Assembly (NCBI RefSeq): GCF_036365525.1
Contig: NC_090387.1
Coordinates: forward strand, 90,251,691 to 90,315,690
Reading direction: 5' to 3'
Source of the DNA: Heterodontus francisci
Lineage: Eukaryota
Length of the DNA stretch: 64,000 bases
Part shown: piece by piece, positions 3,073 through 48,895 of the stretch
How positions within the stretch are numbered: the stretch's first letter is position 1
Layout of the letters: each line of letters begins with the position of its first letter
Notes under the pieces: generated by a model
The model's input: only the letters and a program-made list of their open reading frames with translations
Told to the model about the DNA's origin: nothing
Database searches by the model: none
Made by a program: the position numbers and the translations under genes

Positions 3073-3285
3073 ACCAAGCAAAGGACACCTGATAATAAGC
3101 TGACTTACGCTGCTGTATCTATGGCAGGGTCAAAGAAAACATCAAAGCCTAATGATAAGGATAAGAGCACGGAGTATGCTCAGCTACGGATTGAGAAAAA
3201 AGAGTGGACGTTATTTACATGGAACCGAAAACCACGTGATATTGGTGTCCCGTGCGGAACCCGTTGTATATGTGTGCATATCTAA
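3073..3285 (+). CDS. Last (cytoplasmic) exon of IgSF receptor gene A, with ITIM LTYAAV and ITSM-like TEYAQL
   Basis: Acceptor 'tttcacag' at 3065-3072, phase 0; TKQRTPDNKLTYAAVSMAGSKKTSKPNDKDKSTEYAQLR...; paralogous to 48746-48895. True stop may be TGA 3237-3239 if the A6 run at 3196-3201 lacks one base. Confidence 0.88.
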   Translation, partial: TKQRTPDNKLTYAAVSMAGSKKTSKPNDKDKSTEYAQLRIEKKEWTLFTWNRKPRDIGVPCGTRCICVHI

Positions 3286-3904
3286 CGGCAGGTCTATAAT
3301 CCTAACAACATGACAAAGTAATAATAACTATTCGGAAGGAAAGGTGGAGATTACCAGTTTAATAACTGTCGACATTTAATAACTAACATCGATTTAGAAG
3401 AAGGCGCTTCTGTATGATTGTCCCCTTCGCCTTATTTAAGCAGTTGGGAATGAAATAGATTGTAGAAATTCACTGACACGACGCCCAAATTCTGCTCCAA
3501 CAGGTCCCAAACGTCCAAGGCCAGTGAACTGATTCGTCTTCGTAGTTGTATTTAGTATTTACTGGCCATGGTGTTTGAATTCAGCAAGGGTTGGATTTAC
3601 AACTGTTTCCCGATTGACAGATAAATCCTAAATCAGAGCACTGTGATCGGTCAAGTACCAATAACCGAGTGATTTGAAAATGAATAGAAACCGGGATATA
3701 ATTTTCTGGGGTATAAATTGGATTTGGACGGTAGTGCAATACAGGATTTGGACTCCATTTGTTTTATATTGAAATTTGACCTTTGGAATTGAATTGGGGT
3801 GAAACAAAATGAGCAAAGAGCAATGAATAAGCTATGGAGAAACAGATAATGAAACAACATTTATTTTACGATTTCTGCGGATCCAGCGCTTTCCAAACCG
3901 CTTC

Positions 3905-4270
3905 ATTGTCACTGAAGGAATTTTCAACTGTAGTCACCATTGTCAGGTAGGACAATTGGGAGAGGCAACAACAACACAGTATATTTCCACAAACAACAAT
4001 TAAAATGCATGATTGGATAACTGTTTCAGTGTTGTTGGTTCAGGGATAACTATTGTCCAGGACACGAGGAGAACTTTGCTGTTTATCTGCATATAGTACC
4101 ATGGGTTCTTTTACCATGAAAGGCCAGACGGGAATTTGATTTAATGCCTCCTCCCAGAGACGGTACCTCTGACAGCGCTGCATCGACATGTGTGCCTAGA
4201 TTATTAGCTCAAGTCTTCAAAGCACTAACCTTATGACTCAGAGAGGAGAGTGGTACTGCTGAGCCAAGAG
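3905..4270 (-). mobile_element. Degenerate Deu-type SINE in the putative 3' UTR (paralog about 49570-49955)
   Basis: Reverse complement matches the family at 2190-2998 ('agggataactattgtccaggacacg', 'gagtggtactgctgagcca'). Confidence 0.65.
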
Positions 4271-4372
4271 GGCCACTGATGGAGGAGGTCAAGGCTTACT
4301 TCACAAGTCGAAAGACTTGTTGATTTATGAACTTACCGCGCTCTATAAAACATTACACAGTACGGATAAGAC

Positions 4373-4481
4373 GAATGCAGAATTTAAAGTAAATCCAGAA
4401 AGTAGTACTGGAGAACAGAACTATTTTACTTGTTTTCTCCAGTCGTACTACTTCCTGGATTTAATCTTCAATTGTGCATTC
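4373..4481. repeat. Imperfect hairpin with ~50-bp arms in putative 3' UTR, plus a third direct arm copy at ~4511-4560
   Basis: gaatgcagaatttaaagtaaatccagaaagtagtactggagaa pairs with ttctccagtcgtactacttcctggatttaatcttcaattgtgcattc. Confidence 0.85.
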
Positions 4482-4914
4482 AGCTGAACAATGTTACTTA
4501 AAATGTTGTAGATAAGTGAATGCAGAACTGTACAGTAAATCCAGCAAATTGTAGCCGAGGATAAAACATCACTATAGAAGGAAAAAATAGTTCCCTTAAA
4601 ACAGGTATTTTAAAGTGTTTGCTTTTACCCAGAAGTTGCAATAATTCTTCAAAAGGGTCTAAAGAATCTAAACTGCTTGGTGCATTGTAAATGTGTCGGG
4701 ATTCTTGAATGGGAGAGTAGTGGTATTGGGGTGAAGAGCTTCCGTGGGCAATTGGTCTTTACCAGCCCTTGACTTTGGTTAGGTCGTAATCATCCATCCA
4801 GCTGTAACCTAGTTTCCGTGTATCACTGATATTCGAGTGTTAATGTCCCGGTTTGAAACAACAATAACATGATTGAATGTGGTGATAGACTTGTCTTTCT
4901 TATTTGCATTATAT

Positions 4915-4920
4915 AATAAA
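4915..4920 (+). promoter_or_regulatory. Candidate polyadenylation signal of gene A
   Basis: AATAAA (ATTAAA also at 4948-4953) in a block almost identical to 50605-50610 of copy B, just before a CR1 insertion. Confidence 0.45.
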
Positions 4921-5056
4921 TCCAATGGTAACATTGTGTGCTAGTAAATTAAATGTATATCAAATTCCTTCCTGTTACCTCTTCATGTTGCAGCTGTTGT
5001 ACGCTTGAAGTTCCAGATTTTATGAACATAAACATGTACAAAGTACATTTGGTGAG

Positions 5057-6245
5057 CATAAGAACGTACGAAATAAGAGTATAAATATGCCATTTGGCTC
5101 TTTGAACCTGCCTTACCATTCAATAAGATCATGGCTGATCCGATTGTGGTCCAGACTCCCTGCCTGCCCCCTAACCCTGTATTCACTTGTAAATCAAATA
5201 TCTGTCAAACTCAGCCTTGAATGTAATCAATGACCCAGCCTCCACTGCATACTGGGGTAGAGAATTCCAAAGATTAATGACCGTCTGAGAGAAGCAATTC
5301 CTCCTCATCTCTGTCTTAAATGGGAGACCCCTTATTTTGAAGCTGTGTCCACCAGTTCTAAATTCCGCCACGAGGGGAAACATCCTCTCAGCATTTATCC
5401 TGCCAATCGCCCTCAAAATCTTATGTGTTTTAATAGATTTCCCACTCCTTCTTCTAAACTCCAATGAGTATAGGCACAACCTGCTCAACCTTTCCTCATA
5501 TGACCACCCCTTCATCCCAGAAATTAGTCTAGTGAAACTTCTTGGAACAGCGTCCAATGCAAATCTATCCCTTCTTAAATAAGCAGACCAAAACTGTACG
5601 CAGTACTCTAGGTGCGGTCTCACCAATGCCCTATATGGTTGTAGCAAGACTTGCCTACTTTTATACTCCATCCCCTTGCAATAAAGACCAACATTCCGTT
5701 TGCTTTCCTAATTAATGCTGTACATGCACGCTAGATTTTAATGATTCTAGTATGAGAACAACCAGATCCCTCTGTACTTCAGCATTCTGAAGTCTCTCTC
5801 CATTTAAATAATGTTCTGCTTTTCTATTCTTCCTGCCAAGTGGGCAACTTCACATTTTCCCATGTTATACTTCATCTACCATTTTTTCCCACTTATCCTT
5901 TCTATATACCTTTGCAGATTCCTTGTGTCCTCACCACAAGTTGCTTTCCCAGCTATCTCTGGATTTTCATCAGATTTGACTACAATACACTCGGTCCCTT
6001 CATCATTTATATAGATTGTAAATTGTTGAAGCCCCAGATGATCCCTGTGGCACCCTACTGATTACAGATTTGCAGCCTAAAAATGACCCATTTATCCCAA
6101 CTCCCAGTTTCCTGTTAGTTCGCCAGTCCTCTATCCATGTTAATATTACGCTCAACGCCATGGAGCTCCTATCTTGATAACATTTTATGTAGTTTATCAA
6201 ATGCTTTCTGGAAAAAAACACACTACATCTAATGGTTCTCCTTTA
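5057..6245 (-). mobile_element. CR1 LINE, 5'-truncated (RT C-terminus and 3' UTR); predates the duplication
   Basis: ORF 5183-5671 'LVRPHLEYCVQFWS...LYSLEFRR...NLWNSLP'; paralogous insertion at 50738-51900. Confidence 0.9.
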
Positions 6246-8579
6246 TTCAATTATGTCGTCCCATTAAACGGAAGTAAAGTACATCGCATGGCACAAGCTA
6301 TTGTTTGATGAGTTGCACTTTAAAAAGTGTGCAATATTATGAACATATGAACTAGGAGCAGGAGTAGGCTGCTCGGTCCCTCGAGCCTGCTCCGCCATTC
6401 AATAAGATCATGGCTGATCTGATCATAATATTGAATCAACAAGGGCTGATCCAGGGATTGTGCTCGTAGATCATGGGAAGGCGTTTGCAGGAAAGACTGA
6501 TCATGGAACAATACATCTGCTGAACTTGGTATTCTGAGCAGTTAGGTTAAAGACAAGACTTGAAACGCCCATTTTTTATTGAGTTTCGCCTCTGTAAATC
6601 CATCCATATCGTCGTAGCAAGCTGACCTCACGCAGGTTTTAGCTGGATTGGTCTTGGTGGAAAGGCAAGCTGTGAGCAGAGCCATAATAAGTCTGCCTTC
6701 CTGGGATGCAAGGACTAGTACCAGTGAAAGGCACCACTCAGCAAAGGGACAGAGCCCAATGCATCTCTATCATTCACCTAAACCACTCTCTGTGGTAGCA
6801 TGGTCCATATTCTCACCACTCTCTGGGTAAAGAAGTCAATTTTGAATTCATTATCAGATTTTGTTGGTGTCTAATTTATATTGAAGGCCTTTAGTTTTGC
6901 TCTTCTCCACAAGTGGAACATTTTCTTTCTCCGCCTACTCAAACAAAAACTTTTATAATTTAAAGACTTCTATTAGGTCACCACTCAGCCTTCTCTTTTC
7001 AAAAGAAAAGAGACTCAGCCTTTTAATCCTTTCCTGATAGGAAGACGCTCACTGTTTCAGCTTCAAGCCACACATTGACATAATTTTACTCCCAGAAGGG
7101 GTCAGAGACAGTCGTATTTAAATAGATGGATCATCAGGGCAACTTCGAGTATACCTCAAGTTGAAATGTCAGATCCTGTCCATGTTGTCAAACATGATCT
7201 GTACATTGAGCGAGTGGAAGCCATTCCTGCCGAGGTAACTAAACTGTTCAGGAAAAAAAAACATCATATGAACGTGGGTGAGAAAGCCAACACACCTGCT
7301 CCCATGGATACTGACCTCACTGAGGCAGTGATATCCTGATGTTGGATGCTGCATTCAGGTCTGGCTGCTCATCCAGAGATTCTTCAGTAAGTGCAGCCTC
7401 CCAAGATGTATCTCGAGTGACTTTGTGGAAGTAGGATTGGATCGATTCACTCTTGTTCTCGATAGAAATGAGTAGGCCTAGGGCTGGACTTGAGCCTTAT
7501 CCTCCTCCTATGATGCCTAATCAAGCTAATTTCTCTGTAATGTTCGTTCTCCTACTCCAGCTAAGATATTACAGAGAATAATCCACTCTTGGAAACCTCT
7601 TTGGAAGCTTGTGCGAGACCTAATAAAAAATATTCCATCTTGCCTGAAGTCCATACAGAAACAAATAAAAAGCCAGCTCCAATTCAGAAATTGCCAAACA
7701 GTGCCTCTCTGTTCTGCAAATCATTTTCATAGGGACCTGTTCCTTCTGTGATCCTCTTTCTCAGCAAAACGTGCAGGTAGATTACTTCACTTTCAAATAA
7801 AATTGTTCATTGTCCTTTGCACTCGTTGCCTGCCTCCTTTACTTGGCACCTTGCAGGTATTCCAGGAATGCAATTTCATAGATTCAATTTTCACTGTTCA
7901 CACACTTTACCAGGCTCCCTTATATCTTCATTTTCCTGCTGGTTGACAGAAGCAAGGGGTCATGTCAGAACAAAAATATAAATTAGTTGGCAAGAACAGA
8001 CATAACAGGAAGTCTTCAACTAAACAAAATGAAAACAAGCTATCACTGATTTCCACGTTGCACTGAAAATACCCAATCAATTCGATCTTGGAAATTAACT
8101 GGAGTTAGACTTTGTTAGTAAACGGAATTGGGCCACAGGTCAACCATGACCTAACTGAATGGCGGAACAGTCTTGAGTGACTAAACAACTCCTCCTGTTC
8201 CTGTGTTCCTATGTGAATACTAGCAGCAGTAGGCTCCTCCTGCTTTCAGTTGATGCTCTCTGATCAACAATTTCATGTTGCATTCAATTAGCAATATCTT
8301 TGTTACATGCTCCTGCACTCAATCTCCCTCTCCCTCTTTCAATTTCCTTTGCTCAATTCGTCACTGAACTGTTGGTAGACAAAGGAGAAGGAGATCAAGA
8401 GAGCAAAACAAAGAAAACAGGAAACTTTGAAGTAAAACAAGCAAACGTGAGCCATCGTTGACTTCAATGTTCTGGTCCCATTTAATCTTGGAAACTAAAA
8501 AGCGTTTGGCTTGGTCAGCACTTGCTGGGAGACCACTTGGAAGGACCAGGTGCAGTAAGATTTATTGCCACCAGTCTTA

Positions 8580-10925
8580 AAAGTCCGAAAAGAGAAGCAG
8601 TGGTACTGGACCTAATCTTAGGGAATGAAGCCAGACAAGTGGTAGTAATGTCAATGGGGGTGCATTTCGGGGATAGTGACCATAACTCTGTAAGACTTAA
8701 GGTAGTTATGGAAAAGGACAAAGATGAACCGCAAATAAAGGTACTGACTTGGGGGAAGGCCGATTTCAATATGATAAAACAGGATCTGGGCAAAGGTGAC
8801 TGGGAGCAGCTACTTGTTGGAAAGTCTAAGTCAAACCAGTGGGAGTCATTCAAAAAGGAAATAGTGAGAGTTCAGGGCCAATATGTTCCAGTAAAGGTGA
8901 ATGGTTGGACCAAGTCCATGGAACCCTGGATGTCAAGGGATATAGAGGATTGGATAAGGGAAAAAGGAGGCTTATGGCAGATTCAGAGGGCTGAAAACAG
9001 CGGAGGCCCGAGATGAGTATACAAAGTGTTGGAGGGGTGGTACTTTAAAAAGTAATTAGAAGAGCGAGGAGGGGGTCATGAAAAAAACACTGGTGGGCAA
9101 AATAAAGGAAATCCCAAGGCATTTTATAAGTATATTAAAGGTAAGAGGATAATCAGGCAAAGAGAACGGCTCATCAGGGACCAAAGTGGCAATCTGTGTG
9201 TGGAGCCAGAGGACGTAGCTGAGCCTTTAAATGATTACTTTTCATCTGTGTTCACTATGGAGAAGGACGATGTAGGTGTAAACATCAGGGAGGGGATTGT
9301 GTTACACTTGAATGAATTAGCATTGAAAGTGAGGAAGTATTCGTGGTTTTAGCGAGCTTAAAAATAGATAAATTCCCAGGCCCAGATCAGATGTATCCCA
9401 GGCTGCTATGTGAGGCAAGGGAGGAGATTGCAGGGGTTCTGACATAAAGTTTCAAATCCTTTCTGGCCACTGGAGAAGTGCCAGAGGACTGGAGGACCGC
9501 GAATGTGGTACCATTAGTTAAGAAGTGTAGTCAGGATAAGCCAGGTAATTACAGGCCAGTGAGTCTGACATCAGTGGTAGGGAAATTATTGGGAAAAAAA
9601 ATCTGAGGGACAGGATTAATCTCCACTTGGAGAGGCAGGGATTAATCAAAGATAGGCAGCATGGCTTTGTCAGGGGGAGATAATGTCTAACAAATTTTAT
9701 TGATGTTTTCGAGCAGGTAACTAGGTGTGTCGATGAGGGTAAAGCAGTTGAAGTAGTCTACATGGACTTCAGTAAGGCTTTTGATAAGGTTCTGCATGGG
9801 AGATTGGTCAAGATGGTAAGAGCCCATGGGATCCAGGGCAATTAGGCAAATTGGATCCAAACTTGGCTTAGTGACAGGAGGCAGAGGGTGATGGTCGAGG
9901 GTTGTTTTTGCTATTGGAAAACTGTGACCAGTGGTGCACTGCAGGGAATGGTGCTGGGGCCCTTGCTGTTTGTAGTGCACATTAATGATTTAGACTTGAA
10001 TATAGGAGGTATGATCAGTAAATTCGCAGATGACACAGAAACTTGTGGTGTCGTAAATAGTGAGGAAGAAAGCCTTAGATTACAGGATGATATAGATGGG
10101 CAGAGCAGTGGCAAATGGAATTTAATCCTGAGGCGTGTGAGGTGATGCATTTTGGGAGGACTAACAAGGCAAGGGAATGTACAATGGATGGTAGGACCGT
10201 AGGAAGTGCAGAGTGTCAGAGGGACCTTGGTGTACTGATGTATAGACCACTGGTGTATAGATCACTGAAGGCAGCAGCACAGGTAGATAACGTGATTAAG
10301 AAGGCTTATGGGATACTTGCCTTTATTAGCTGAAGCATAGAATATAAGAGCAGGGAGGTTATGATGGAGCTGTACAAAACGCTAGTTAGGTCACAGCTAG
10401 AGTTGTGTGTACAGTTCTGGTAGCCACACTAAAGGAAGGGTGTGATTGCACTGAAGAGCATGCAAAGGAGATTCACCAGGATGTTGCCTGGGCTGGAGCA
10501 TTTCAGCTGTGAAGAGAAACTGAATAGTCTATGGTTGTTTTCCTTAGAGCAGAGAGGGGGACCTGATTGAGGTATACAAAATTATGAGGGGCATTGAAAG
10601 GGTCGATAGAAAGAAACTGTTTCCCTTAGTGGAGGTGTCAATAACCAGGGGGCATAGATTTAAGGTAAGGGGCAGGAGGTTTAGAGGGGATTTGAGCAAA
10701 ATAAATTTCATCCGGAGGGTGGTTGGAATCTGGAACACACTGCCTGAAGAGGTGGTCGAGGCAGGAACCCTCACAACATTTAAGAAGTATTGAGATGAGC
10801 ACTTGAAACGCCAGAGCATACAATGCTACGGGCCAAGTGCTGGAAAATGGGATTAGAATGGTGCTTGGTGGCCAGAATGGACACGATGGACCAAAGGGCC
10901 TGTTTCAGTGCTGTATAACTCAATG
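8580..10925 (+). mobile_element. CR1 LINE ORF2, frameshifted, 5'-truncated
   Basis: 'LDLILGNE...GDSDHNSV', 'ISKFADDT', 'RVVGIWNTLP'; tail 'gtttcagtgctgtataactc'. Confidence 0.92.
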
Positions 10926-10929
10926 CCTC

Positions 10930-12180
10930 TGACAGGCCATTTGGCCCAACTAGTCTGTGCTGGTTTTTGTTTTCCACGCGAGACTCCTCCCATTCCATTT
11001 ACCTCATTCCAGCCTTTCAACATACGTTTCCAATTCCTTTTTCTCACTGGCACTCATCAAGTTTCTGTTTGAAAGCATCGAACAAAGAACAAAGAACAAA
11101 GAACAGTACAGCACAGGAACAGGCCGTTCAGCCCTCCAAGCCTGCGCCGATCTTGATGCCTGCCTAAACTAAAACCTTCTGCACTTCCAGGGACCGTATC
11201 CCTCTATTCCCATCCTATTCATCGAAGCTGTTTGCCTCAATCACTTCCTGTGGTAGCGAGTTCCACATTCTAACTACTGAGACTAAAGACATTTCTTCTT
11301 ATTTTCATGTTTATTATTAACTAACTTGTATTTATGGATCCTCGTTTTGGATTCTCCCACAAGTGGGAACTCGGCATCATCCTGCCCAATCCATTTATGA
11401 TTTTAAAGACTTCTATCAGCTCTCCTTTGAGTGTTATCTTTTGTAAAGAATAAAGCCCCAACCTGTTCAATCATTCCCAATAGCTGTAATCAGTTTTGGT
11501 ACCATGTTTGTAAATCTTGTTTGCACTTTTACCAGCATTTGTAGGTCCATTTTATTGAACGGATGCCAGAACTGTGATAAGTGCTCTAAGCACAGCCTGA
11601 CCAAGGTAATATACACATTTAATATAACTTTACTTCTTATGAATTCTGTTCCCCAAGAAATAAATCACAGTGCTTTTTTGGAATTTTTAATTGTTTTCCT
11701 GCTTTAAATGATTTATTTTTATCTGTACATCTGGATCCCTTTACCTTTCTGCCCATTTACTTTTTTTATTTCCTAATAAATGGTGAAGTTTGTCTTTTTC
11801 CTACCAAAATATATCACCTCAAATTTATTTATGTTCTGTGTTTCTATTGAGTCCAAAACATTGTATGTTTTCAAGAAGGAGTTAGATATAGTTCTTCGGT
11901 CTAAAGGGCATGGGGCGAACGCGGGAACAGGTTACTGAGTTGGATGATCATCCATGATCATAATGAATGGCGGAGCAGGTTCGAAGGTCCGAATGGCCTA
12001 CTCCTGCTCCTATTTTCTATGTTTCAAGTACATTTGGCACTTAACATCCAGCATGCAAGTTTTCTTATGTCCTATTGTGTGATGTTGCACTCTTCCTCAG
12101 TGTTTGCTATAGCACCCAGGTTGGTACAATCTGCATTTTTTAGTATTGAGTTACATGTTCCCAAGTCCAAATCGTAGATT
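10930..12180. mobile_element. Cluster of old CR1 fragments with nested young CR1 3' tails (11081-11220 minus; 11850-12022 plus)
   Basis: '(gaacaaa)n cagtacagcacaggaacaggcc' is the reverse complement of the 56950-57016 tail; 'ggcggagcaggttcgaaggtccgaatggcctactcctgctcc' CR1 3' UTR. Confidence 0.7.
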
Positions 12181-13945: not shown

Positions 13946-14099
13946 TCAGATGTGCATGCAGGCCTTTCATCTGAAGTTGGAAATGTTCGTGAATATGAAG
14001 AGATTCCATTCTCTCAGTGAGCTTGTATGGGACCACTCGCAGCACATCATGCAAGTGCGTATCTGCTAAAATGCACTCACAGTGAGACAATCATCCATC

Positions 14100-19941: not shown

Positions 19942-19944
19942 GAT

Positions 19945-22200: not shown

Positions 22201-22231
22201 GTCAAATAATTTCATAAAATCATTATTTTCC

Positions 22232-35150: not shown

Positions 35151-36252
35151 ATGGGACTTTCCTGCTGTTTAAAGACTGTTTCGTTGAGTGATGCCTAAAA
35201 GCAGGCATTGGTTGGACCGTTGAGCTCCAATATGCAGAGTTATGGGGAATAAACTGGACAGCTCTTTCAAAGAGGCTGCACAGGCACGCTGGGCCAAACG
35301 GTCACTTTCGATCCTGTAATGCTCTCCGCTTCTGTCTGAAATCTTACCTGTGCTGGGATAGGTGACAGCCTGCGGCAGGTCCTGTGGGAACCGATAAGAG
35401 GGGGAAAAAAACCTCCTAGAGTATGTCTTCATCAATCCACCAGTCACAGATGCATGTGCCTGGTCTGCATACTTCCGGCAGACGTCCACTGCCTACAATC
35501 TAACACCTGCACCAAGATGGTTTTTGACATGCTTTGCATCACAGGTGTGCACGCGTGTTGCAAAGGCCATTTTGCACCTAGCGGCCAAAAAGCGAGCGTT
35601 ATTGAGCCCAATTTCTCGCCCAGCATGGCTCAGCCATTGGTTGAAGAGGCACACTGTTGCTTGGCCTGTTCACGCACACCAGAGAACCCCTGTTGAGGGC
35701 AGCATACTGTAAATGATCACGTGCAACCCTAAGTTGCCGCCCAAAACTTCATGAAACCTCTGTGGACAGTTGTAAACGTAATGAACAGCGAGAGCCGCTC
35801 TTTTGTTCGTGACCGCAAAATTGGGGGACATGGTTTTCATACACTTCACTGTGGGGATGGATTGATGCATTACACACTGACAACCTGGTGACTATCTTTC
35901 CATTGTCCCTCTCCCTCTCAATCAGACCTGTGTCAAACGTTCCTCCCTCCCTGCATCTGTCCATGACCAATAGATGCATCAAGGAATCTGTGGGTCACTT
36001 TGTCCCCTGTACATGTGATCCGAGATTATTTTTCGATAAACCTTTGTTGTTTTTGTAGGTAGACAGTGATATTTGTGGCTGTGCTCCGACGTTTGAAACA
36101 TCTGTAAGCCATTAAATGCTGTGACAGACTAGCTCACCCTTCTCCCAACCCGTTATCGACTTTGTGCACTGAGCCATTTCCGAGTTTGGATGAAATATGA
36201 GAAAGATCGGCATTGCTGATAATATATTTATAGTAAGAATCACCGAGCATTT

Positions 36253-36958
36253 CTTTTGGGCCTCCTTATCTCGAGAGACAATGGATACGCGCCTGGAGGT
36301 GGTCAGTGGTTTGTGAAGCAGCGCCTGGAGTGGCTATAAAGGCCAATTCTGGAGTGACAGGCTCTTCCACAGGTGCTGCAGAGAAATTTGTTTGTTGGGG
36401 CTGTTGCACAGTTGGCTCTCCCCTTGCGCCTCTGTCTTTTTTCCTGCCAACTACTAAGTCTCTTCGACTCGCCACAATTTAGCCCTGTCTTTATGGCTGC
36501 CCGCCAGCTCTGGCGAATGCTGGCAACTGACTCCCACGGCTTGTGATCAATGTCACACGATTTCATGTCGCGTTTGCAGACGTCTTTATAACGGAGACAT
36601 GGACGGCCGGTGGGTCTGATACCAGTGGCGAGCTCGCTGTACAATGTGTCTTTGGGGATCCTGCCATCTTCCATGCGGCTCACATGGCCAAGCCATCTCA
36701 AGCGCCGCTAACTCAGTAGTGTGTATAAACTGGGGATGTTGGCCGCTTCAAGGACTTCTGTGTTGGAGATATAGTCCTGCCACCTGATGCCAAGTATTCT
36801 CCGAAGGCAGCGAAGATGGAATGAATTGAGACGTCGCTCTTGGCTGGCATACGTTGTCCAGGCCTCGCTGCCGTAGAGCAAGGTACTGAGGACACAGGCC
36901 TGATACACTCGGACTTTTGTGTTCCGTGTCAGTGCGCCATTTTCCCACACTCTCTTGG
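36253..36958 (-). mobile_element. RTE-clade LINE 3' end, young
   Basis: ORFs 36708-36950 and 36303-36701 in the same frame separated by one stop; C-terminal CSTCGRACHSRIGLYSH. Confidence 0.92.
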
Positions 36959-37109
36959 CATTGGTTGGATAGTTATTCGTAGTCTATCTGGTTAATCTAC
37001 ATCTGGAAATTCTATACGCCCTGCCCTAAAATCCATCATTTCCGGACCAGCCCATGCCCTTTTCATTACAGCCTTCCTTAATGTAGGAGGTCCTGAGGCA
37101 AGGCCGATC

Positions 37110-38260: not shown

Positions 38261-38278
38261 ATAAAAATATTGCGAGCG

Positions 38279-38292
38279 GCGCCCTCTTCTGG
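38279..38292 (-). promoter_or_regulatory. CTCF-like motif ~170 bp upstream of the gene B start codon
   Basis: Minus strand CCAGAAGAGGGCGC vs consensus CCASYAGRKGGCRS (1 mismatch) in a CpG-retaining patch. Confidence 0.4.
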
Positions 38293-38457
38293 CGGATTTA
38301 CAACTGTTTCAGCAAAGGGACAACCAAAATATTTTCTGAACCCATACACAGGATGTTTCGCTTCTTTGAGGTGTTTGTCGCACTCCGACCCTTCGGCATT
38401 CTTACAAACCATCAGCCACTTCATGGTCTGTCGTTCCGAGTGATCAAGTGATTCAGA

Positions 38458-38512
38458 ATGTTAGCGAGTGTTGTACTTCAGTGCCTCTCTGTTTTGGGGA
38501 TCATATTCACAG
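38458..38512 (+). CDS. Gene B exon 1: signal peptide MLASVVLQCLSVLGIIFT
   Basis: agaATG, hydrophobic core, phase-1 donor AG|gtaaca; not in the ORF track. Confidence 0.82.
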
Positions 38513-38673
38513 GTAACAGTTCCCTCTATATCTTAATTTCTCGTTAAACCTGGCATTTATTTAGCTTTCCTTTGATATAACATGTTTCATTTTCCTTTGT
38601 ACATATTCCCTGATTCCCTTATTCTCGCGCTTTTCCTTCTGTAATACTATCTCATTATCATATTTTCCGATAG

Positions 38674-38994
38674 CTTGCGGCGAAACTTCAGTCAAAGTGA
38701 ATCAGTACCCTGAGAGTACGAGCATAAACCCGGGAAGAAATGTTTCCTTTCGCTGCACGCTTTCCATGTTTCAAGACAGCCCACCTGTGAATGTCTACTG
38801 GTGGAAGGAGGGTGATAATCAATATCTAAACACAGGACAGGATGACAGAAAATTAATTAGCGTTAAAACTGGATTCAAAGCCGTTCTTTGGATAATCAAT
38901 GTGAGTGTACAAGACGCAGGAGTATACTATTGCACTGTCACTCATCGAGGCAAAATAGTTGGAAACGGAACGGGATCCAATTTAGTTGTAACGG
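38674..38994 (+). CDS. Gene B exon 2: V-set Ig domain with germline J-like G strand
   Basis: tag|CT; VSFRC...VYWWK...LWIINVSVQDAGVYYC...GNGTGSNLVVT; donor G|gtaagt. Confidence 0.93.
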
Positions 38995-40005
38995 GTAAGT
39001 ATAAAAACAACGAATGAGATCCCTGTAACTGTAATATTTCACAATTCGGAACATTTATTGATTGTGCTTCGAAGGATTCACATCGCAAATTAAATTCCAT
39101 TGTTTTAGCATGCATACATTCAAATTGCACCTGTGACGGCTGCAATTATTTTTTGATGTGCTTCAGAATATTTCAGCAATATTGATCAAGACAAGCATTA
39201 TCTCTTAGTTGCTTGATTCCCAAAATACACAGTAAACGGTATACAGAAAATTATTGAAGTTAAAATTGCAGTATCATTTACGGAGGTGTATATCCCGACA
39301 GTGTTAGATACAAGCGCGGATCTGCCGCTGTGAGCACAGATATTGCCCTATTTGAGATTTATTTTGTCTCCGTTACGCGAGACTGACTGTTTCTATCTGG
39401 ATTCAGATTTTCCTAGCTCTAATTTAATCATCTATATGTCAGGATCTTTGAAAGGGCATATTACTAACAGTTAAATTTTACATTCTGTAGATTGAGCCTC
39501 CCATCCCATTTTTCTTCATGATTTTCACCTGTAAATAAGGTATCATCCTGGACCTTGGCGCCAGTGTCCCTCTAGTTTGGTAAATTATATTTTCTCATCA
39601 GTTCTTGTGTTCAACAGAGTTCGCAGCGGTACCGCGAAACAGGGCGAGCAACGCAAATTACATCCCGCTCAATTTTCTTTCCATTAGAATAGAAAATTGG
39701 GAGAGCTGTAAAAATCATCCGTTTTTTTCCCGGCGGTAACATTGCAATTACCGCCGAAATAATAGTGACACTTGTGAAAATCCGTTTAAGATGCAACTAC
39801 TGACAGCGCAAAGTGAACATCCATGCAGTGCCACAAAGACTCATCCCCTCACCACACCCTCCACCCCCAGCCCCGACCCCCCTCCGCCCACCGACCCACC
39901 CGAGACCTCCTCCAGTGTAAACTTTGAAACGGGCTGAAACAAAACGTTCGGTTGTTCACCTTGATTAATGTCCCATTAACATTATTGTCCTTCATTTTTT
40001 TTTAG

Positions 40006-40318
40006 CTCCGCCAACTCCACTGAAAATTAAATCTCAGCAACCTGAGAAGGATTCATCTGTTTCTCTGACTGTTGTGTGCGTGACATCTCCCTTTTATCCG
40101 GAGAGTATCAGCTTCACTTGGTATAAGGATGGCAACAAAACTACAACAGGGATAAATAACGTTATTGAACCTAATACCGACGGACTATATGAAGCCTCCA
40201 GCCCGCTTGCAAGAGACGCAGTTTGTCCCGCCCGGAACTGTTTATTCCTGCCTGGTCTCTCACAGTAGCCTCCAAATATCAGCCATGGCCACTTACACTG
40301 TCACCTATCACAGCACAG
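40006..40318 (+). CDS. Gene B exon 3: C1-set Ig domain, frameshifted at CCC 40202-40204
   Basis: polyT-ag acceptor; [23 protein letters not shown]...GLYEASS, then +1 frame RLQE...[10 protein letters not shown]; donor AG|gtgaga. Confidence 0.9.
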
Positions 40319-40339
40319 GTGAGATTTCAGATAAAATCG

Positions 40340-41400
40340 GAGAATCGTACAGCATCGAAAGAGGTCATTTGGCCTGGCGTGTCTGTGCGGCCTCTTTGAA
40401 AGAGCAGTCCAGTTTAGTCCCCATAACTCTGCAGATTAAACCCCTTTAAGCAACATGTCCAATTGCCTTTTGAAAATCCATGTATAAATTGCTTCCAACA
40501 ACCTTTCAGCTCGTGTATTCGACATCTCAGCAACCCCCGTGAGAAAAGAATTCCCCTCAAAATCCCTCTAGTCTTTTTGCCAGTAGGTTTAAACCTATGA
40601 TTGCCGGCTATCGACCCATTTCTTCAGAGAAATGTTTCTTCCTACTTGATTCACTAAAACCCGTCATAATTTTGAATATTTCTCTTCGATATCCCCTTAA
40701 TTTTCTGTGTTCTAATGAGTATCCACGTAGCTGAAGGCTCTCCTCCCTGTTAAAGCCGGTAAATCTCGCCTGTATTCTGTCCAAGACCTTGACAGTCTTT
40801 TAAAATGCGGTGCCCAGCATTGTGCACAATAATCTAACTGAGAACTAACCAGAGATGTGTAAACTTTAGCATGGCTTCCATGTTTTTGTATCCGATGCCT
40901 CTATTCACAAAACTAATTATCGCACAAGCTTTCCTTAACCCTACTTATTAACTTGCTCTGCCAGCTTCAAAGATTTGTAAATATGCACCCCTATCTTCTC
41001 CTGATTTAGTATGCCCCTCAAAATAGCACCATTTCCATTATACTACCTCTCCATGTTGTTTCACCCAAAGTGCACACTTCAGACTTATCCACATTGAATT
41101 GCACTTACCATTCGTCTGCCCATTTCCTCACTGTATTTTCTCCTATAGTCTGCTACTACCTTCTCACCATTTACTACGTTACCAATTTTGCATCATTAAC
41201 AATTTTCAAATTGTACTCCCGATATCAAGTTCAGATCATTTATGCATATCAGGTAAAGTAGTGGTCCTGATACTGATCCCTGAGGGAATCCCACTGCATA
41301 TTTCTCTCCTTTCAAAAAATCCACTCTCTGCCACCTATCACTTCGCAAATTGCATACCCAAGGTACCTCGGTGCATTAAATCCAATATGTCATAGCTCAA
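40340..41400 (-). mobile_element. Old CR1 LINE fragment in intron 3
   Basis: 'gtggtcctgatactgatccctgagggaatccc' (GIPQGSVSGP on minus); CR1 3' UTR near 40345. Confidence 0.7.
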
Positions 41401-41449
41401 CATTCTTTTGCTTCATAAAACTGTACCTTAATACAAAACTATTAACTAA

Positions 41450-41912
41450 AGATTTGCATTTATATAACGATTTTCACAACCACTGGACATCTCAAAGTGC
41501 TTTACAGCCAATGAAGTACTTCTGAAGTACAGTCACTGTTGTAGTGTAGAAAACGCAATAGACAATTTGCACACAGTAAGCTCCCACAAACAACAATGTG
41601 ATAATGACCAGATAATTTGTTCTGTGATGTTGATTGAGGGATAAATATTGGCTAGCACACCAAGGATAACTCCCCTGCTCTTCTTTGAAATAGTACCATG
41701 GGCTCTTTTACATCCACTTGAGAAGGCAGATAGGGGCTTGATTTAATATCACATCTGTAAGACAGCACCTCCAACAGTGCTGCAGTGCAGCACTCCCTCA
41801 CTAATACATTGGACTGTCAGCCTTATTTTTGTGCTCAAGCCCTAAAGTCGAATCTAAACCCAGAACCTTATAACTCAGCGGCAAGAGTGCTACCAACTAA
41901 GCCACGGCTGAT
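41450..41912 (-). mobile_element. Deu-type SINE, full length
   Basis: Minus strand 'tcagccgtggcttagttggtagcactcttgcc' head to 'tatataaatgcaaa' tail. Confidence 0.8.
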
Positions 41913-42027
41913 GTCAACTGCAATAACTGACTGAAAATATTTTGAATTCTCTATCTTTCAGGGTATTTTCTTATTGAATTAAACAGCATACAGGTTCAGA
42001 TTTATATATTTAATTTACATCTTGTAG

Positions 42028-42138
42028 GTGGTAAGATCACACATTACTTGCTGATTTCTCGATCCGCATGGGGCGTCTTTGTATTACTGATGCTGGGTAT
42101 CACGATTGTGAAGCGATGTTTCTCAAAGAAAAATAACG
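42028..42138 (+). CDS. Gene B exon 4: transmembrane exon GGKITHYLLISRSAWGVFVLLMLGITIVKRCFSKKNN
   Basis: ttgtag|GT acceptor, hydrophobic stretch followed by KR..KK stop-transfer, donor G|gtaaga, phase 1-1; Arg codon at 42060-42062. Confidence 0.85.
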
Positions 42139-42883
42139 GTAAGAAATAATTTAGTGTTTTTTTGCTAAAGCTAATACAAGTTTCAAACAGTTAGCCTGTC
42201 CCACAGGAGCAGAGGTGATTGTTGAATACAAAAGTTTTTCTGGGGTTTAAAATATATGAGATCCTACACAGGCACTCCAGGTTACCATTGTAGAGGTAGA
42301 TTCAAATTTCTGAAATGGAGTGGAATTTTCCAAGGTCTCCAGTGACTGACGGAGATTCGGGGTGGAATTGTATGGGCCTGCTAATGACTGGAATGAAGGC
42401 GGGGGGCCATAAAATATCGGCGGAAGGCTGTGGGTGGACTGCCCCTCACCTTCCCATCGCCATGCGATTTTTTGGGGGCAGGAAAGGCCTTCCTAACCAA
42501 AGGCCAATTGAGGATATTAAGTGGCCAATCAATAGCCAATTAAGGGCCTGTTCCCGTCGCCACTGGTATTCTGCCTCGAAATGGAGATATCTCAGTAAAA
42601 CAAGGTGACCTCCCTGCAGTCTTTGGGGATGGGGGGGGGGGGCTCTCTGTGGGCAATCTGTGTCCCACAGAGGGTCCCCAGTGGCAAAGGCCACCCATCC
42701 ATGAATAGTCCCTCCACCACCCCCCCCCCCCCCTCCTACATCTCCCCTCCCACCTGCCGAACTAGCCCTAGCGACCTCACCACTCTTACTGGAATCTGGG
42801 ACTCCAGCGATCAGCCTCTTTTCGTAACAGCAGTGGTCACCGCTCCCAGTGGTGATGCCAGTACTACTGAGCTGCCAGCTCAG

Positions 42884-44051
42884 TATCATTTCTAAAAGAT
42901 TTCCCACGAACGAGGTCAAACTGACTGGTCTGTAGTGGCTGAGCATGTCCTTACACACATTTTTGAACAATAGTGTAACACTTGCAATTCTCTGGCACCA
43001 CAGCTGTATCTAAGGAGCATTGGAAGATAATGGCCAGTGCATCTACAATTCTCTAAATATCTTTAGATACATCTCATCAAGTCCTGGTGACCTCGTCCTG
43101 CTTGGGGGTGGGATCCCGATCCTGAAAGGCACGGGAGCCACGGCGCAGGCAGTTAATTGCTTGAGGGTCTTAAATAGAGATGGGGTGGGGGGAGCGGGGG
43201 GAGATGCTCTCCAAAGGACTGAGGCATCGGAGCAATCTTACTTCTATTGTCGAAAGTGATCATAAACCAAGCAATTCTGAACAACAAATGTGATATCTAG
43301 GTCATGTTATAATTTACATTGAATCTACCAGAAGTGTCTTTCAAGGCCGAGTAAATATTCAATTTAAAGTCTTAAACTTCATTCGTCACCAGGAGTGCAG
43401 AACGATGGTGAAAGATCCAACTCTCCTGAACAGCTGGTAGGTTTTCATAATTCGTACTAATGTATTTCAAATGTAAATATATTCATAACGGAGTTGTAAT
43501 CTATTAAATGCAACAATTTATCACGTTTAATTCCCTGCTGCACTGATTCATACAAAATAGCACAGGCTGAATTCAGCGCTTATACAACAGACAGTTTTCT
43601 ACAGCACATAACTAGTAAAAGGGTGGTAAAAGAATGAGTGGGGCCACTTAGGGTCCTAAAAGGGATTTTATGCATGGAGGCAGAGGGCATTGCTGAGGTA
43701 CTAAATGATTACTTTGCACCTGTTTTTGCTCCCAAAGTCATGGTGAAAGAGGAGGTTGTTGAGACACTGGAGGGGCTAAAATTGACAAAGAGGAGGTATT
43801 AGATAGACTGGCAGTACTTTAAGTTGATAGGTCACCAGGACTTGATGAGATGTATCTAAAGATAATTAGAGACGTGAGAGTGGAAATTGTAGATGCACTG
43901 GCCATAATCTTCCAATGCTCCTTAGATACAGCTGTGGTGCCAGAGAATTGCAAGTGTTACACTATTGTTCAAAAATGTGTTTAAGGACAAGCCCAGCCAC
44001 TACAGGCCAGTCAGTTTGACCTCGGTTGTGGGAAATCTTTTAGAAATGATA
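42884..44051. repeat. Inverted repeat, arms 42884-43093 and 43829-44051 (CR1-derived), enclosing exon 5
   Basis: Near-identical reverse complements, e.g. 'agatgcactggccat.atcttccaatgctccttagatacagctgtggtgccagagaattgcaagtgttacactattgttcaaaaatgtgt'. Confidence 0.9.
43393..43436 (+). CDS. Gene B exon 5: short cytoplasmic exon GVQNDGERSNSPEQL
   Basis: caccag| acceptor and CTG|gtaggt donor; phase 1-0 bridges exon 4 to exon 6 exactly. Confidence 0.72.
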
Positions 44052-45005
44052 ATTCAGCACAGAATTAATAGTTCCTTGGTCAAATGTGGATTAAGCAAGT
44101 AAAGCCAGCATGGATTAGTTAAGGGCAAATAGCTAAGTTGTCTGAGCTTTTTGAGGAGGTAACAGAGAGGGTTGATGAGGGTAATGCAACAGATGTGCTG
44201 CACATGGACTTTCAAAAGGCCTTTGATTAAATGCGACGTGACAGGCTTGTCAACAAAGTTAGGCCCATGGAATAAATGGGACAGTAGCAATATGGATACA
44301 ACATTCACTGAGTGACAGAAAGCAGAGAATAGTTGTGAATGGTTGTTTTTGGACTGGAAGAAGGTATATAGTGGGATTCCCCAGCAGTTGGGACCTCTGC
44401 TTTTCTTGATACACATTAATGGCCTAGACATGGTTGTACAAGGAACAATTTCATAATTTACGGATGACACAAAACTTGGAAGCATTGTGAACTGTGAGGA
44501 GGTTAGTGATAAACTTCAAAAGCAAGCTGGTGTTTTGGGCAGACAAGTGGCAGATAAAATTTAATGCAGAAAAGTATGAAGTGATTCATTTTGGTAGGAA
44601 GAATGAGGAGAGGCAATATAAATTAAATGTTATGATACTAAAGGGGATGCAGGCTCAGAGGAACCTGGGGGTGCATGTGCACAAATCATGGAAGGTTGCA
44701 GGGCAGGTTGAGAAATAGAGTAATAAAGCATATGGATCCTGGGCTTCATAAATAGGGGCGCAGAGTACAAAACAAGGAAGTTGTAATAAACCTGTATAAA
44801 ACACTATTTCGGCCTCAACTGGAGCATTGTGTCCATACTTGTTGAAGAATGTGAAGGCATTAGAGAGGATACAGAAAAAAAATCACGAGAATGGTTCCAA
44901 GGTGAGGACCTTCAATTATGTGGATAGGTTAGAGAAGCTAAGTCTGTTCTCCTTGGAGAAGAGAAGATTAAGAGGAAATTTGAAAAAGAAGTTCAGAAAC
45001 ATGAG
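43610..45005 (+). mobile_element. CR1 LINE ORF2 fragment in intron 5
   Basis: 'WADKWQIKFNAEKYEVIHFGRKN', 'LFSLEKRRLRG'. Confidence 0.88.
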
Positions 45006-45009
45006 GCCT

Positions 45010-45677
45010 CAAAAGTCCAAGTGTATCAGGCCTGTGTCCTCAGTACCTTGCTCTATGGCAGCGAGGCCAGGACAACGTATGTCAGCCAAGAGTGACGTCT
45101 CAATTCATTCCATCTTCGCTGTCTCCGGAGAATACTTGGCATCAGGTGGCAGGACCATATCTCCAACACAGAAGTCCTCGAGGCGGCCAACATCCCCAGC
45201 TTATACACACTACTGAGTCAGCGGCGCTTGAGATGGCTTGGCCATGTGAGCCGCATGGAAGATGGCAGGATCCCCAAAGACACATTGTACAGAGAGCTCG
45301 CCACTGGTATCAGACCCACCGGCCGTCCATGTCTCCGCTTTAAAGACGTCTGCAAACGCGACATGAAATCCTGTGACATTGATCACAAGTTGTGGGAGTC
45401 AGTTGCCAGCGTTCGCCAGAGCTGGTGGGCAGCCATAAAGACAGGGCTAAAGTGTGGCGAGTCGAAGAGACTTAGTAGTTGGCAGGAAAAAAGACAAAGG
45501 CGCAAGGGAAGAGCCAACTGTGCAACAGCCCCGACAAACAAATTTCTCTGCAGCACCTGTGGAAGAGCCTGTCACTCTAGAATTGGCCTTCATAGCCACT
45601 CCAGGTGCTGCTTCACAAAGCACTGAGCACCTCCAGGCGCTTACCCATTGTCTCTCGAGATAAGGAGGCCAAAGAAG
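45010..45677 (+). mobile_element. RTE-clade LINE 3' end
   Basis: ORF 45228-45626, nearly identical to 36303-36701. Confidence 0.92.
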
Positions 45678-46439
45678 ATAGATATAAATGTTGTGACTTT
45701 CTGGATGAATTAAACACTGAACGTAGGATTCTAAGTGTAGTCCAGAAAGTGACTGCCAAGCTTCAAATAATCTCGTGTTCCACGTTCTAATAATTGTTTG
45801 CAGAATTCTATTCTCTATTTACTTGTTTGCACATTGAAAGTGACCTGACTACAGTTGCTCCAGACTCCCCTCAGTCACCCTGTGCTAATTCAATTCCATG
45901 CATTCTACAAATGCAACACAGATTTTCTAATTATGCTCAATTTCATAATGTAATCTAAATGGTTTTTACTAATTCTGCTGACGCAAATGTGTAGCTTCCA
46001 ATATATAAACCTTAACAGCTGCAGGTTATTTCAAACAGTGACTCCTGTCAATAGACTGCAGGGATGAGCTTTGATCCCTCATTTTTGTTAATTTTCTTGA
46101 CCTGGAAATTTCACGGGATTTCCATAACGTCAATGGAATATTCGCGGAACTCTCAGAGAACCGGCCTAAAGACCGTTTTCAGCCATTTCCCCCATTTCTC
46201 CGGGGATTTTCGTAATCACGAAGCCAAGTGAGATCAGGAGACGAGTTGTAGCTCTGTGGAGTTTTGAAGGCAGATTTTCGCAAAATAATGTTTGGCGTTA
46301 AGCAATAAATGCATGTGGGGAGCACACAAACATCAATCTGGTTGGTAGGATCACACTTTCCAAGGAGTTTTCTTCATATTCATTTAAATGGAGGGAAAAG
46401 GCATCGGGTCCTTCTGCACACGGAGAGCCCAACCGAATT

Positions 46440-47418
46440 TAACACAGAAACATAGAAAATAGGAGCAGGAGTAGGTCATTTGGTCCTTCGAGCCTGCTCC
46501 GCCATCCATTATGATCATGGCTGATCATCCAACTCAGTAGCCTGTTCCCGCTTTCACGCTATATCCTTTGATCGCTTTAAACCCAAGAGCTACATCTAAC
46601 TCCTTCTTGAAAACATACAATGTTTTGGCCTCAACTGTTTTCTGTGGCAGCAAATTCCCACAGGCTCACCACTCTCTGGGTGAAGAAATTTCTCCTCATC
46701 TCAGTCCTGAATGCTTTAGCCCATATCCTTAGACTATGACCCCTGGTTCTGGACTCCTCCACCATCGGGAACATCCCTCCTGCATCTACCCTGTCAAGTC
46801 CTGTTAGAACTTTGTAGGTTTCTATGAGATCCCCCCTCACTCTTCTGAACTCCAGCGAATATAATCCTAACCGACTCAATCTCTCCTCATACGTCAGTCC
46901 CACCATCCCAGGAATCAGTTTGGTAAACCTTCGCTGCACTCCCTCTATAGCAAAAACATCCTTCCTCAGATAAGGAGACCAAAAGTGCACACAATATTCC
47001 AGGTGTGGCCGCACCAAGGTCCTGTATAATTGCAGCAAGACATCCCTGCTCCTGTACTCGAATCCACTCACTATGAAGGCCAACATACCATTTGCGTTTT
47101 TACCACCTGTTGGACCTGCATGCTTACCTTCAGTGACTGGTGTACGAGAACACACAGGTCTCGTTGCATATTCCCTTCTCTCAGTTTATAGCCGTTCAGA
47201 TAATAATCTGCCTTCCTGTTTTTGCTACCAAAGTGGACATTTATCCACATTATACTGCATCTGCCATGCATTAGCCCACTCACTCAACTTGTCCAAATCA
47301 CCCTGAAGCCTCTCTGCATCCTCCTCACAACTCACCCTCCCACCCAGTTTTGTGTTATCTGCAAATTTAGAGATATCGCATTTAGTTCCCTCATCTAAAT
47401 AATTAATACATTGTGAAT
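46440..47418 (-). mobile_element. CR1 LINE 3' part, specific to copy B
   Basis: ORFs 46631-47155 and 47225-47428 ('ISKFADNTKLGG'); copy A empty site 'aaccgaacataacaaga' (~1914-1930). Confidence 0.9.
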
Positions 47419-47733
47419 AACATAACAAGATATATATGTTTGTCCTTCAGTCCATGCAGGGCACAGCCGATGTGATGGTACCTTATGCTGCACTCGAGAA
47501 AACGAATTGCTTGAAAGCTCCAAGACCAAAGCATCAATAAAGGACAGTGCATGCCCAGGTAGGAGTGAGTAGCTGAACAGAGAGACACAGAATGCCTGTA
47601 ATTAACAGATAAAACGGTGCAGTGTAAGAAATACCTTAATAGTGCTTTAATACTCTGTTGTACTTAACACTAATTCTGCAAGGCTTTGGCAATGTTAGTT
47701 ATGTCAGCTGTAGCTCAGTTGGTAAAACTCTGG

Positions 47734-48282
47734 GTTCATCCCAAGCAGCTCTGTAACACAGGAGTCTGTGCTCTATGGGCTGTTCCCAGGGACGCACACC
47801 GAGACAAACATCACCTGCTGCTGGAGGACTATCAATTCGGTGAAAGACGCCCTTTGGTCTGCCCGAAACCTGCTGGTCTTCCAGCGCAAAGAGTTGTCCA
47901 CCACCGAATGTTGCAGACTGGCACATTCCAAGGTCCAGGACTACGTGCTGAGGGACGCACTAATGCTTGGGGCAGCCGCAGCAAAGGCTCAATGGGGAAA
48001 GACCACAGTGTAAGGTCCCCCCACCAAGCTGAACTGAGGGGCTGGATCCATGGGAAACTCCTCGAACTGTATCGTTAATATTTTCATTTGCTGTAAATGT
48101 AAAATGGTTTTTGGCATGACAATTGTGAAATGGAAGGGTGAAGGGTTGTGAAGAAACTCATGTTAGTATAGAAGGAAACTGATCTCCCTTGCAATGTTTG
48201 TATTTTTTGGTGCTGTTTGAAACTGTTTGGCAATGTAATTTTTGCAGATTTTTATGAATAAAGTATATTTTGGAAATAAAAA
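47734..48282 (+). mobile_element. L1/Tx1-type LINE 3' end with poly(A) tail and 10-bp TSD, specific to copy B
   Basis: TSD aaaactctgg at 47724-47733 and 48283-48292; 'LYGLFPG...VKDALWSARNLLVF'; aataaa plus A-tail. Confidence 0.85.
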
Positions 48283-48745
48283 AAAACTCTGGCATCTAAC
48301 TCACAAGGTTGTGGGTTCATAGTCGCATCCTAGAGAGTTGAGCACAAAATGTAGTTTGACATTCCAGTGCAGTACTGAGAGAAATCTGCACTGTTGGGGG
48401 GTTCTGTCTATCGAATGAGACGTTGCACTGAGGCCTCCGTTTTTTTCTAAGGTGAATCCCGTGACACTATTTGAAGAGGAGGAGGGGAGTTATCCCTAGT
48501 GTTCCAGTCAATATTTATCCTTCAATCAACATCACTAAAACAGATTATCTGTTCATTAACATATTGCTGTTTGTGGAAGCTTGCTGTGAGCAAATCGGCT
48601 GCCGTATTTCCTACAGTACAAAGGCCCGATATAAATGCAAGCTTTTTCTTTGTTTTTTTTTCTTATTTGACTTACAGCGCTTAACTTTACATTGCAAACA
48701 ATTAACATATCGAACTAATTATATTCTCAAATATTGATTTCACAG

Positions 48746-48895
48746 ACCAAGCAAAGGACACACGCTGCTGGATCTATGGCAGGGTCAAATAAAACGGCAA
48801 AGCCTAATTATCAGGATAAGAGCACGAAGTATGCTCAACTACCGATTGAAAAACAAAGAGCAGACGTCACTGACACAGAACCGAAAACCACGTGA
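48746..48895 (+). CDS. Gene B exon 6: cytoplasmic tail lacking the ITIM (TKQRTHAAGSMAGSNKTAKPNYQDKSTKYAQLPIEKQRADVTDTEPKTT*)
   Basis: tttcacag| acceptor identical to copy A; open to TGA 48893-48895; not in the ORF track. Confidence 0.85.
   Translation, partial: TKQRTHAAGSMAGSNKTAKPNYQDKSTKYAQLPIEKQRADVTDTEPKTT

Follow-up and report, generated by a model that had tools for sequence, protein, structure and literature searches.

We analysed a 64,000-nucleotide stretch of DNA from the horn shark Heterodontus francisci, referred to below as the window, which takes in a section of a cluster of SIRP-like receptor genes arranged in tandem. It holds the 3' end of one receptor gene (gene A), whose tail carries an ITIM (immunoreceptor tyrosine-based inhibitory motif), and a complete paralog (gene B) whose last exon has lost that motif. 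The original prediction had taken the two for an inhibitory/activating pair that arose by precise removal of the ITIM. On our analysis, gene B is most likely an unannotated paralog with a decaying tail, and probably a pseudogene in the assembled haplotype. The paired layout itself is seen across the family to which both genes belong.

The genes of this cluster share one layout: the leader precedes a V domain that includes a J motif, then a single C1 domain, the membrane span and a tail spread over several exons, with tyrosine motifs of the ITIM type and of the immunoreceptor tyrosine-based switch motif (ITSM) type. We searched 1.84 billion proteins with the translated V exon of gene B, and the matches were confined to cartilaginous fish. 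The best match was the Heterodontus francisci protein P0001, with the longer isoform P0151 (XP_067905936.1/XP_067905935.1), which RefSeq names SIRP-alpha-like. Residues 319-388 of P0151 equal positions 3073-3282 of the window at 100%, and residues 280-318 match 1948-2064 by tblastn; gene A is therefore the annotated gene XP_067905935.1. In its product, a V(J) and a C1 domain are followed by a membrane span and a tail with an ITIM; of the gene, only the last two exons lie inside the window. The 99.65-Mb contig has at least seven further annotated paralogs, and the horn-shark cluster comprises at least eight genes. The cluster had been called undescribed, which does not hold, since RefSeq already names its members SIRP-alpha-like or SIRP-beta-like; in the literature open to our searches on shark and cartilaginous-fish SIRP, paired receptors and PRARP, we came across no description of this shark family.

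Structure and lesions of gene B

By mapping family proteins onto the window and reading the junctions, we found gene B to be a complete seven-exon paralog at 38458-48895 with canonical splice sites throughout (Table 1). Searches and counts were made exon by exon, not on one joined model. No protein in the 90%-identity clusters equals gene B, which is without a protein model. Its V domain is intact (Pfam on 38565-39014: V-set 1.3e-8, ig 7e-12), and the exon closes at 38994 with the germline-joined J-like sequence GNGTGSNLVV. Compared with gene A, 102 of the domain's 106 residues match, and a PDB sequence search with this exon alone returned generic Ig matches only. The C1 exon has an extra C in the run at 40202-40204, a +1 frameshift relative to every family member, with a stop at 40266-40268. 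Past the extra C, the shifted frame gives the family sequence; once the base is left out, 93-97 of 103 residues match the paralogs (93/103 for P0151 and, as the best values, 97/103 for paralogs C and D). Further downstream, exon 6 carries the tyrosine motif VPYAAL (47478-47495) and then a nonsense codon, TAA at 47538-47540, where gene A has GAA. If exon 6 is retained, the ITIM-deleted last exon of gene B falls 3' of this stop. Pfam searches of the two tail exons gave nothing meaningful.

Table 1 Exons of genes A and B in the window, and the duplicated blocks around them (asterisk, stop codon)
Feature	Position	Strand	Basis
Gene B exon 1, leader MLASVVLQCLSVLGIIFT, canonical donor	38458..38511	+	family protein mapping
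Gene B exon 2, intact V(J) domain	38674..38994	+	Pfam V-set/ig
Gene B exon 3, C1-set domain	40006..40318	+	Pfam C1-set 1.1e-8
Gene B exon 4, membrane span GKITHYLLISRSAWGVFVLLMLGITIVKRCFSKKNN	42028..42138	+	family protein mapping, junctions
Gene B exon 5, small cytoplasmic exon (G)VQNDGERSNSPEQL	43393..43436	+	family protein mapping, junctions
Gene B exon 6, tail (SMQGTADVMVPYAALEKTNCLKAPRPKHQ*RTVHAQVG)	47451..47564	+	family protein mapping, junctions
Gene B exon 7, last exon, 18-nt deletion	48746..48895	+	A/B alignment
Gene A cytoplasmic exon 6 (SMQGTADVMAPYAELEIMNPLKTPRPKHQERTAHAQVG)	1951..2064	+	tblastn of P0151/P0001, nucleotide alignment
Gene A last coding exon, stop TAA 3283-3285	3073..3285	+	100% match to P0151 residues 319-388
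A-side of segmental duplication (3' part of gene A and downstream flank)	895..7146	+	window-vs-itself blastn
B-side of segmental duplication	45658..52777	+	window-vs-itself blastn

In gene A, the first tyrosine motif, APYAEL, lies in exon 6 at 1978-1995. The last exon begins at 3073 after a cacag acceptor, and the ITIM LTYAAV (3100-3117) and the motif TEYAQL (3169-3186) could both be read there as predicted. Alignment with gene B likewise reproduced the in-frame 18-nt deletion (equivalent to 3089-3106), which turns PDNKLTY into H and whose junction lies inside the codon CAC at 48761-48763. It also reproduced the change of the +3 Val to Gly (gta>gga) and that of TEYAQL to TKYAQL (gag>aag; 48824-48841). 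The last exon of gene B carries eight private amino-acid changes. The PDNKLTY deletion was not found in paralogs A, C, D, E, F or H, and among the readable paralogs it is private to gene B. The predicted loss of a third tyrosine codon stood as a base change, tac at 3216-3218 to gac (Asp) at 48872-48874. Its reading in gene A did not, because an A-run at 3196-3203 is 1 nt shorter in gene A than in gene B and all paralogs, so that tac lies outside the ITIM reading frame of the assembled gene A. Similarly, the frame said to stay open in gene B is open within the last exon, as far as TGA at 48893-48895, but is broken upstream by the exon 6 TAA and the C1 frameshift.

The short A-run gives gene A a C-terminus that reads EWTLFTWNRKPRDIGVPCGTRCICVHI*, 27 unrelated residues in a frame that the RefSeq model retains. 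The family C-terminus, QRADVIYTEPKAT or ...IEKQRADVIYTEPKAT, is read in gene B's frame and is that of all other family members. The shift costs gene A the family's C-terminal VIYTEP tyrosine. That tyrosine is Ser in paralog C and Asp in gene B, so this motif is weakly conserved. Gene A has three of the family's four tail tyrosine motifs, the second being His. The family's second tyrosine, TVYAQ in other sharks and the chimaera, is in fact His in A, B, C, E and H (RTAHAQ, RTVHAQ); its loss therefore predates the duplication of these horn-shark genes.

We compared substitution density in the tail with that in the flanking DNA. Between the last exons of A and B, 11-13% of the aligned positions differ; the corresponding values are 7% for the 3.9-kb downstream flank and 13% for the adjoining upstream intron. 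The tail exon of gene B thus diverges like the surrounding non-coding DNA, and the loss of the ITIM looks like drift. Over exon 6 and two parts of the last exon, the method of Nei and Gojobori (NG86) gave 0.111 nonsynonymous (dN) and 0.145 synonymous (dS) substitutions per site for the A/B pair, with a dN/dS ratio (omega) of 0.77. When nonsynonymous changes were polarised at the protein level with six horn-shark paralogs as outgroups, about 14 in the tail exons were private to B, in addition to the stop and the deletion, and about 3 were private to A. If synonymous changes split evenly, omega would be about 1 for the B tail and well below 1 for the A tail. The share of codons with a residue private to B is 2/209 for V and C1, 5/36 for the membrane exon, 6/38 for exon 6 and 8/49 for the last exon; the membrane exon and the two last tail exons together have 19 in 123.

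The indels point the same way. The 4.2-kb A/B alignment contains 24 indel events, of which 7 have a length divisible by three, and lengths between 6 and 23 nt occur often; the two events in the 213 nt of the last exon equal the background density of the flank. Since in-frame indels of such lengths are frequent in the flanking non-coding DNA, the 'precise removal' of the ITIM is no more than chance would give. With these rates, private changes and indels, neutral decay would be expected to produce an in-frame deletion of 18 nt that takes out a single tyrosine motif from the three in this 150-nt exon. Because the ITIM-deleted exon sits in a copy that has other disabling lesions and drifts neutrally, loss of the motif is not evidence of selection. 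Gene B bears the marks of a duplicated (unprocessed) pseudogene: a nonsense codon, a frameshift, a 6-codon deletion and tail-exon divergence at least equal to that of the flank.

The duplication itself was recovered when the window was compared with itself. The A-side block matches 48620-52777 at 88.8% identity over 4.2 kb, close to the predicted ~90%, and 45658-46417 at 91-92%; the match is broken by repeat insertions specific to one copy. A segmental duplication thus stands. We propose that gene A is an annotated inhibitory-type member and gene B an older tandem duplicate whose 3' half is decaying. The tail lesions (the exon 6 nonsense codon, the 18-nt deletion and the private changes of the last exon) would have accumulated at a neutral rate, with the C1 frameshift added in the assembled haplotype. 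Loss of the ITIM would then belong to a set of lesions acquired by drift, in a gene that has ceased to be maintained as an inhibitory receptor, and would not be a targeted edit. Gene B appears to be non-functional in this haplotype.

Membrane charge and tail length across the family

The membrane span of gene B, LLISRSAWGVFVLLMLGITIV (LLISRSAWGVF...), carries an Arg (codon cga, 42060-42062) where gene A, whose span LLISASAGGVFVLLVLSLVIV is uncharged, has Ala. Charge in the span was tabulated against the tail, as had been suggested with the prediction, in 64 curated cartilaginous-fish family members with a clear membrane span. All ten members with an embedded Arg or Lys had a tail of at most 41 residues with no more than one tyrosine motif, while two or more motifs were present in 31 of the 54 uncharged members (Fisher 6e-4 for a basic residue with a short tail, a descriptive count, as the sequences are related to one another). 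Because a charged span goes with a short tail across these 64 members, the family has the classic paired-receptor layout.

An intact paralog of the charged, short-tailed type does exist in the horn shark. P0200/P0095 is encoded on the same 99.65-Mb contig, beyond the window, with Arg in the span and a 27-residue tail in which only the motif APYVAI is left. Judged by its sequence, no other gene of the cluster would be as good a candidate for a genuine activating receptor. Gene B looks like a member of this charged branch, or a mosaic with it, and its membrane Arg would mark descent from, or exchange with, an activating-type branch of the family.

The claim of a pair was therefore partly sustained. 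Genes A and B are duplicated V(J)-C1 receptors with a membrane span, and gene A has ITIM/ITSM-type motifs. They have near-identical ectodomains, an ITIM member with an uncharged span and another member with a basic residue in the span, as paired receptors do. What gene B does not have in this assembly is an intact reading frame. A role as a working activating sibling is not supported: the gene carries a nonsense codon and, as assembled, a frameshift, it has no protein model, and no RNA contig lay on its membrane exon in runs unable to show absence. The useful result concerns the family, which in the horn shark forms a cluster of eight or more genes, some with ITIM tails and others with short tails and a membrane Arg. 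Paired inhibitory/activating receptors are a recurring outcome of host-pathogen conflict, and that sharks have them, within a V(J)-C1 family automatically annotated as SIRP-like, bears on the age of the design and on what the non-rearranging relatives of antigen receptors do. A descriptive comparative study of the shark family could be worthwhile.

Public reads and competing explanations

We examined public reads over gene B. The only DNA runs that cover it come from one sample, in the form of short contigs; together with two small runs of the same sample that we guessed to be RNA, they were placed on 38400-44399, a 6-kb stretch that ends ahead of the last two exons. An exact match between contigs and window was seen over 41882-42357 and most of 42649-43642, except 43029-43063. 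As the 41882-42357 contig has no differences, the membrane exon of gene B and its Arg are present in the reads. Contigs over 38.6-40.6 kb, the V-C1 part, differ from the window at 1-2% of sites, and gene B's two private V residues (38763, 38778) were not seen in the contigs. Taken together, V-C1 contigs that differ by 1-2% and identical contigs over the membrane exon and exon 5 point to another allele, or an additional and almost identical copy, of the 5' half of gene B.

For the transcripts, a spliced 822-nt RNA contig has Ile>Thr at 38725, the 40206 form of paralog C described below and 19 of 92 differences in the membrane exon, as expected of paralog C (P0163). A further RNA contig, with FSGV, agrees with paralog D, so transcription of the family is shown. 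The membrane exon of gene B had no RNA contig on it, in two small contig-only RNA runs that are unable to show absence.

Several observations weigh against reading gene B as a pseudogene. Over 40202, the read contigs lack one C or have the paralog-C form (deletion at 40206, SSQLQ), with an exception at ~5x depth in one run. Contigs lacking the extra C may come from paralogs reading SSRLQ or from another allele or copy of gene B, and the C1 frameshift may be confined to the assembled haplotype, or it may be erroneous; the read contigs neither corroborate nor refute it. All seven exons have kept their canonical splice sites, and a gene B transcript that skips exon 6 would avoid the TAA and could read the last exon. 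Such skipping, with exon 5 joined straight to the last exon, is annotated for paralogs D (P0164) and F (P0199). The membrane Arg is found at the same position of the span in the intact short-tailed P0200 (LLISRCAWGG) and stingray P0005 (LLISRCVW), both of which keep one PY motif before an early stop, as gene B would. The V and C1 exons are nearly without private changes and decay, which selection, instead of gene conversion, could explain. Finally, the silence of the RNA runs carries the limit just given.

These observations are what a functional interpretation builds on. Gene B, or its allele in other haplotypes, would then be a working activating or ITIM-less sibling of gene A, with the Arg recruiting an adaptor that bears an immunoreceptor tyrosine-based activation motif (ITAM). 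Inhibition would be turned off by the exon 6 stop or, in an exon-6-skipping transcript, by the ITIM-deleted last exon, and the C1 frameshift would be an assembly error or a private null allele. We consider this unlikely. The Arg codon does lie within a DNA read contig identical to the window, intact short-tailed relatives have the same residue, basic membrane residues go with short tails in the family, the contigs at 40202 lack the extra C, and gene B combines intact splice sites and a nearly unchanged ectodomain with a precedent for exon-6 skipping in D and F. However, the tail exons evolve neutrally, and the membrane exon that holds the Arg has as many private changes per codon (5/36) as the tail. 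The contigs without the extra C may stem from SSRLQ paralogs such as A, D, E and H. Gene B has neither a protein model nor an RNA contig on its membrane exon, and VPYAAL remains upstream of the stop, so that truncation alone leaves a tyrosine motif. A more specific version, in which an inhibitory-to-activating switch has been caught in progress, strikes us as quite improbable. An intact-C1 B-like allele, as hinted by the read contigs, would encode an Arg receptor with a tail silenced by redundant lesions, namely the exon 6 stop and the ITIM deletion of the last exon. If true, it would offer a direct view of the birth of a paired receptor in the oldest jawed-vertebrate lineage.

The clean ectodomain beside a battered tail can also be explained by conversion rather than selection. 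On this account gene B is a mosaic, with leader, V and C1 recently overwritten from a functional C- or D-like neighbour and the membrane and tail exons left as an old dead remnant. We regard this as a plausible account that falls somewhat short of an even case; it is compatible with the pseudogene reading and refines it. The paralog-C RNA contig differs from gene B at 7 of 322 nt in V and 9 of 317 nt in C1, but at 19 of 92 nt in the membrane exon. Likewise, gene B is closest to C and D in C1 (97/103) but to A in V (102/106). Against it, with the paralogs compared as protein sequences, membrane exons diverge strongly among intact paralogs too, A and C differing at 11 of 36 residues.

One further option is that A and B are two haplotypes of a single gene, placed in tandem by the assembler. 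The 1-2% contig differences at 38.6-40.6 kb do show some complexity of haplotypes or copies. Yet the non-coding DNA of A and B differs by 7-13% and holds different repeat insertions, contigs exactly matching gene B occur in the reads, and the annotated paralogs on the same contig number at least seven beyond these two genes. We rejected such an artefact on the divergence and the copy-specific insertions, and it is extremely improbable.

Known receptor systems and the surrounding locus

Among mammalian paired receptors, SIRP-alpha is inhibitory and SIRP-beta activates through a membrane Lys and DAP12; the tail of human SIRP-alpha has a four-tyrosine layout. The shark genes resemble SIRP in having an N-terminal V domain with a J-like strand (G-x-G-T-x-L-x-V) in one exon, followed by a C1-set domain and a single membrane span. 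The shark tail similarly alternates ITIM-type (xxYAxL) and TxYxx[ILV]-type tyrosines, the complete set (VxYxxL (xxYAxL), TVYAQ, LTYAAL and TEYAE[IL]) being present in P0016, P0023 and P0161, and short-tailed siblings carry a basic membrane residue. The differences are equally clear. The horn-shark genes, gene B and all models, have one C1 domain where SIRP has two, with two seen in skate P0010 alone, and the basic residue in the sharks is an Arg near the outer end of the span. Phmmer against PDB chains gave, as its three best matches, UrIg2 (9dmx) at 2e-16, SIRP-alpha (2wng) at 4.3e-15 and SIRP-gamma at 9.4e-13, with Ig light chains at ~3e-11. The shark ectodomain is thus no nearer to SIRP-alpha than to UrIg2, and only somewhat nearer to it than to Ig light chains. 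On these sequence comparisons, membership of the shark genes in the SIRP family is not established.

Activating receptors arise from inhibitory ones by tail loss, and pseudogene by-products are frequent. In line with KIR2DS/3DS, SIRP-beta, PILR-beta and Ly49H, gene B is a tandem duplicate with a near-identical ectodomain, a charged span and a disabled ITIM tail with relic exons downstream. Unlike them, its reading frame as assembled is interrupted within the ectodomain, and its tail has several independent neutral lesions instead of one conserved truncation.

We also considered UrIg and UrIg2, the elasmobranch non-rearranging VJ-C1 genes, which share the single-exon VJ domain followed by a C1-type domain; UrIg2 was the best match among solved structures. 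UrIg2 has nine or more C domains (PMC12227049). Both genes are reported to be expressed mostly in liver, UrIg2 in gill as well, and UrIg protein to occur in extracellular matrix (PMC12227049). The term 'ITIM' does not occur in that paper (PMC12227049). The genes studied here, by contrast, form a multigene cluster and encode short V-C1 receptors whose tails bear ITIMs, and we rejected an identity of the family with UrIg/UrIg2 on domain number, expression and the absence of ITIM from that paper.

The window has no N runs and a G+C content of ~43%, with abundant copies of long and short interspersed nuclear elements (LINEs and SINEs). Several LINE fragments resemble one another at 84-95%, in part with inverted orientation (36247-36983, 45010-45676 and 19037-19684; 9041-10930 versus 58710-60588), and the fragment at 45010-45676 forms the upstream edge of the B-side duplication block. 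A SINE-like element at 41400-41900, in intron 3 of gene B, has a very high copy number (contig depths in the DNA runs add up to more than 200,000). Its relatives at 2620-3004 (inverted) and 48458-48621 stand directly upstream of the final exon of each of the two genes. Between the two genes, a G+C-richer block at 32-38 kb contains an open reading frame fragment on the minus strand (34076-34372) that matches the Harbinger/PIF transposase domain DDE_Tnp_4 (Pfam E 4e-5), slightly below the gathering score.

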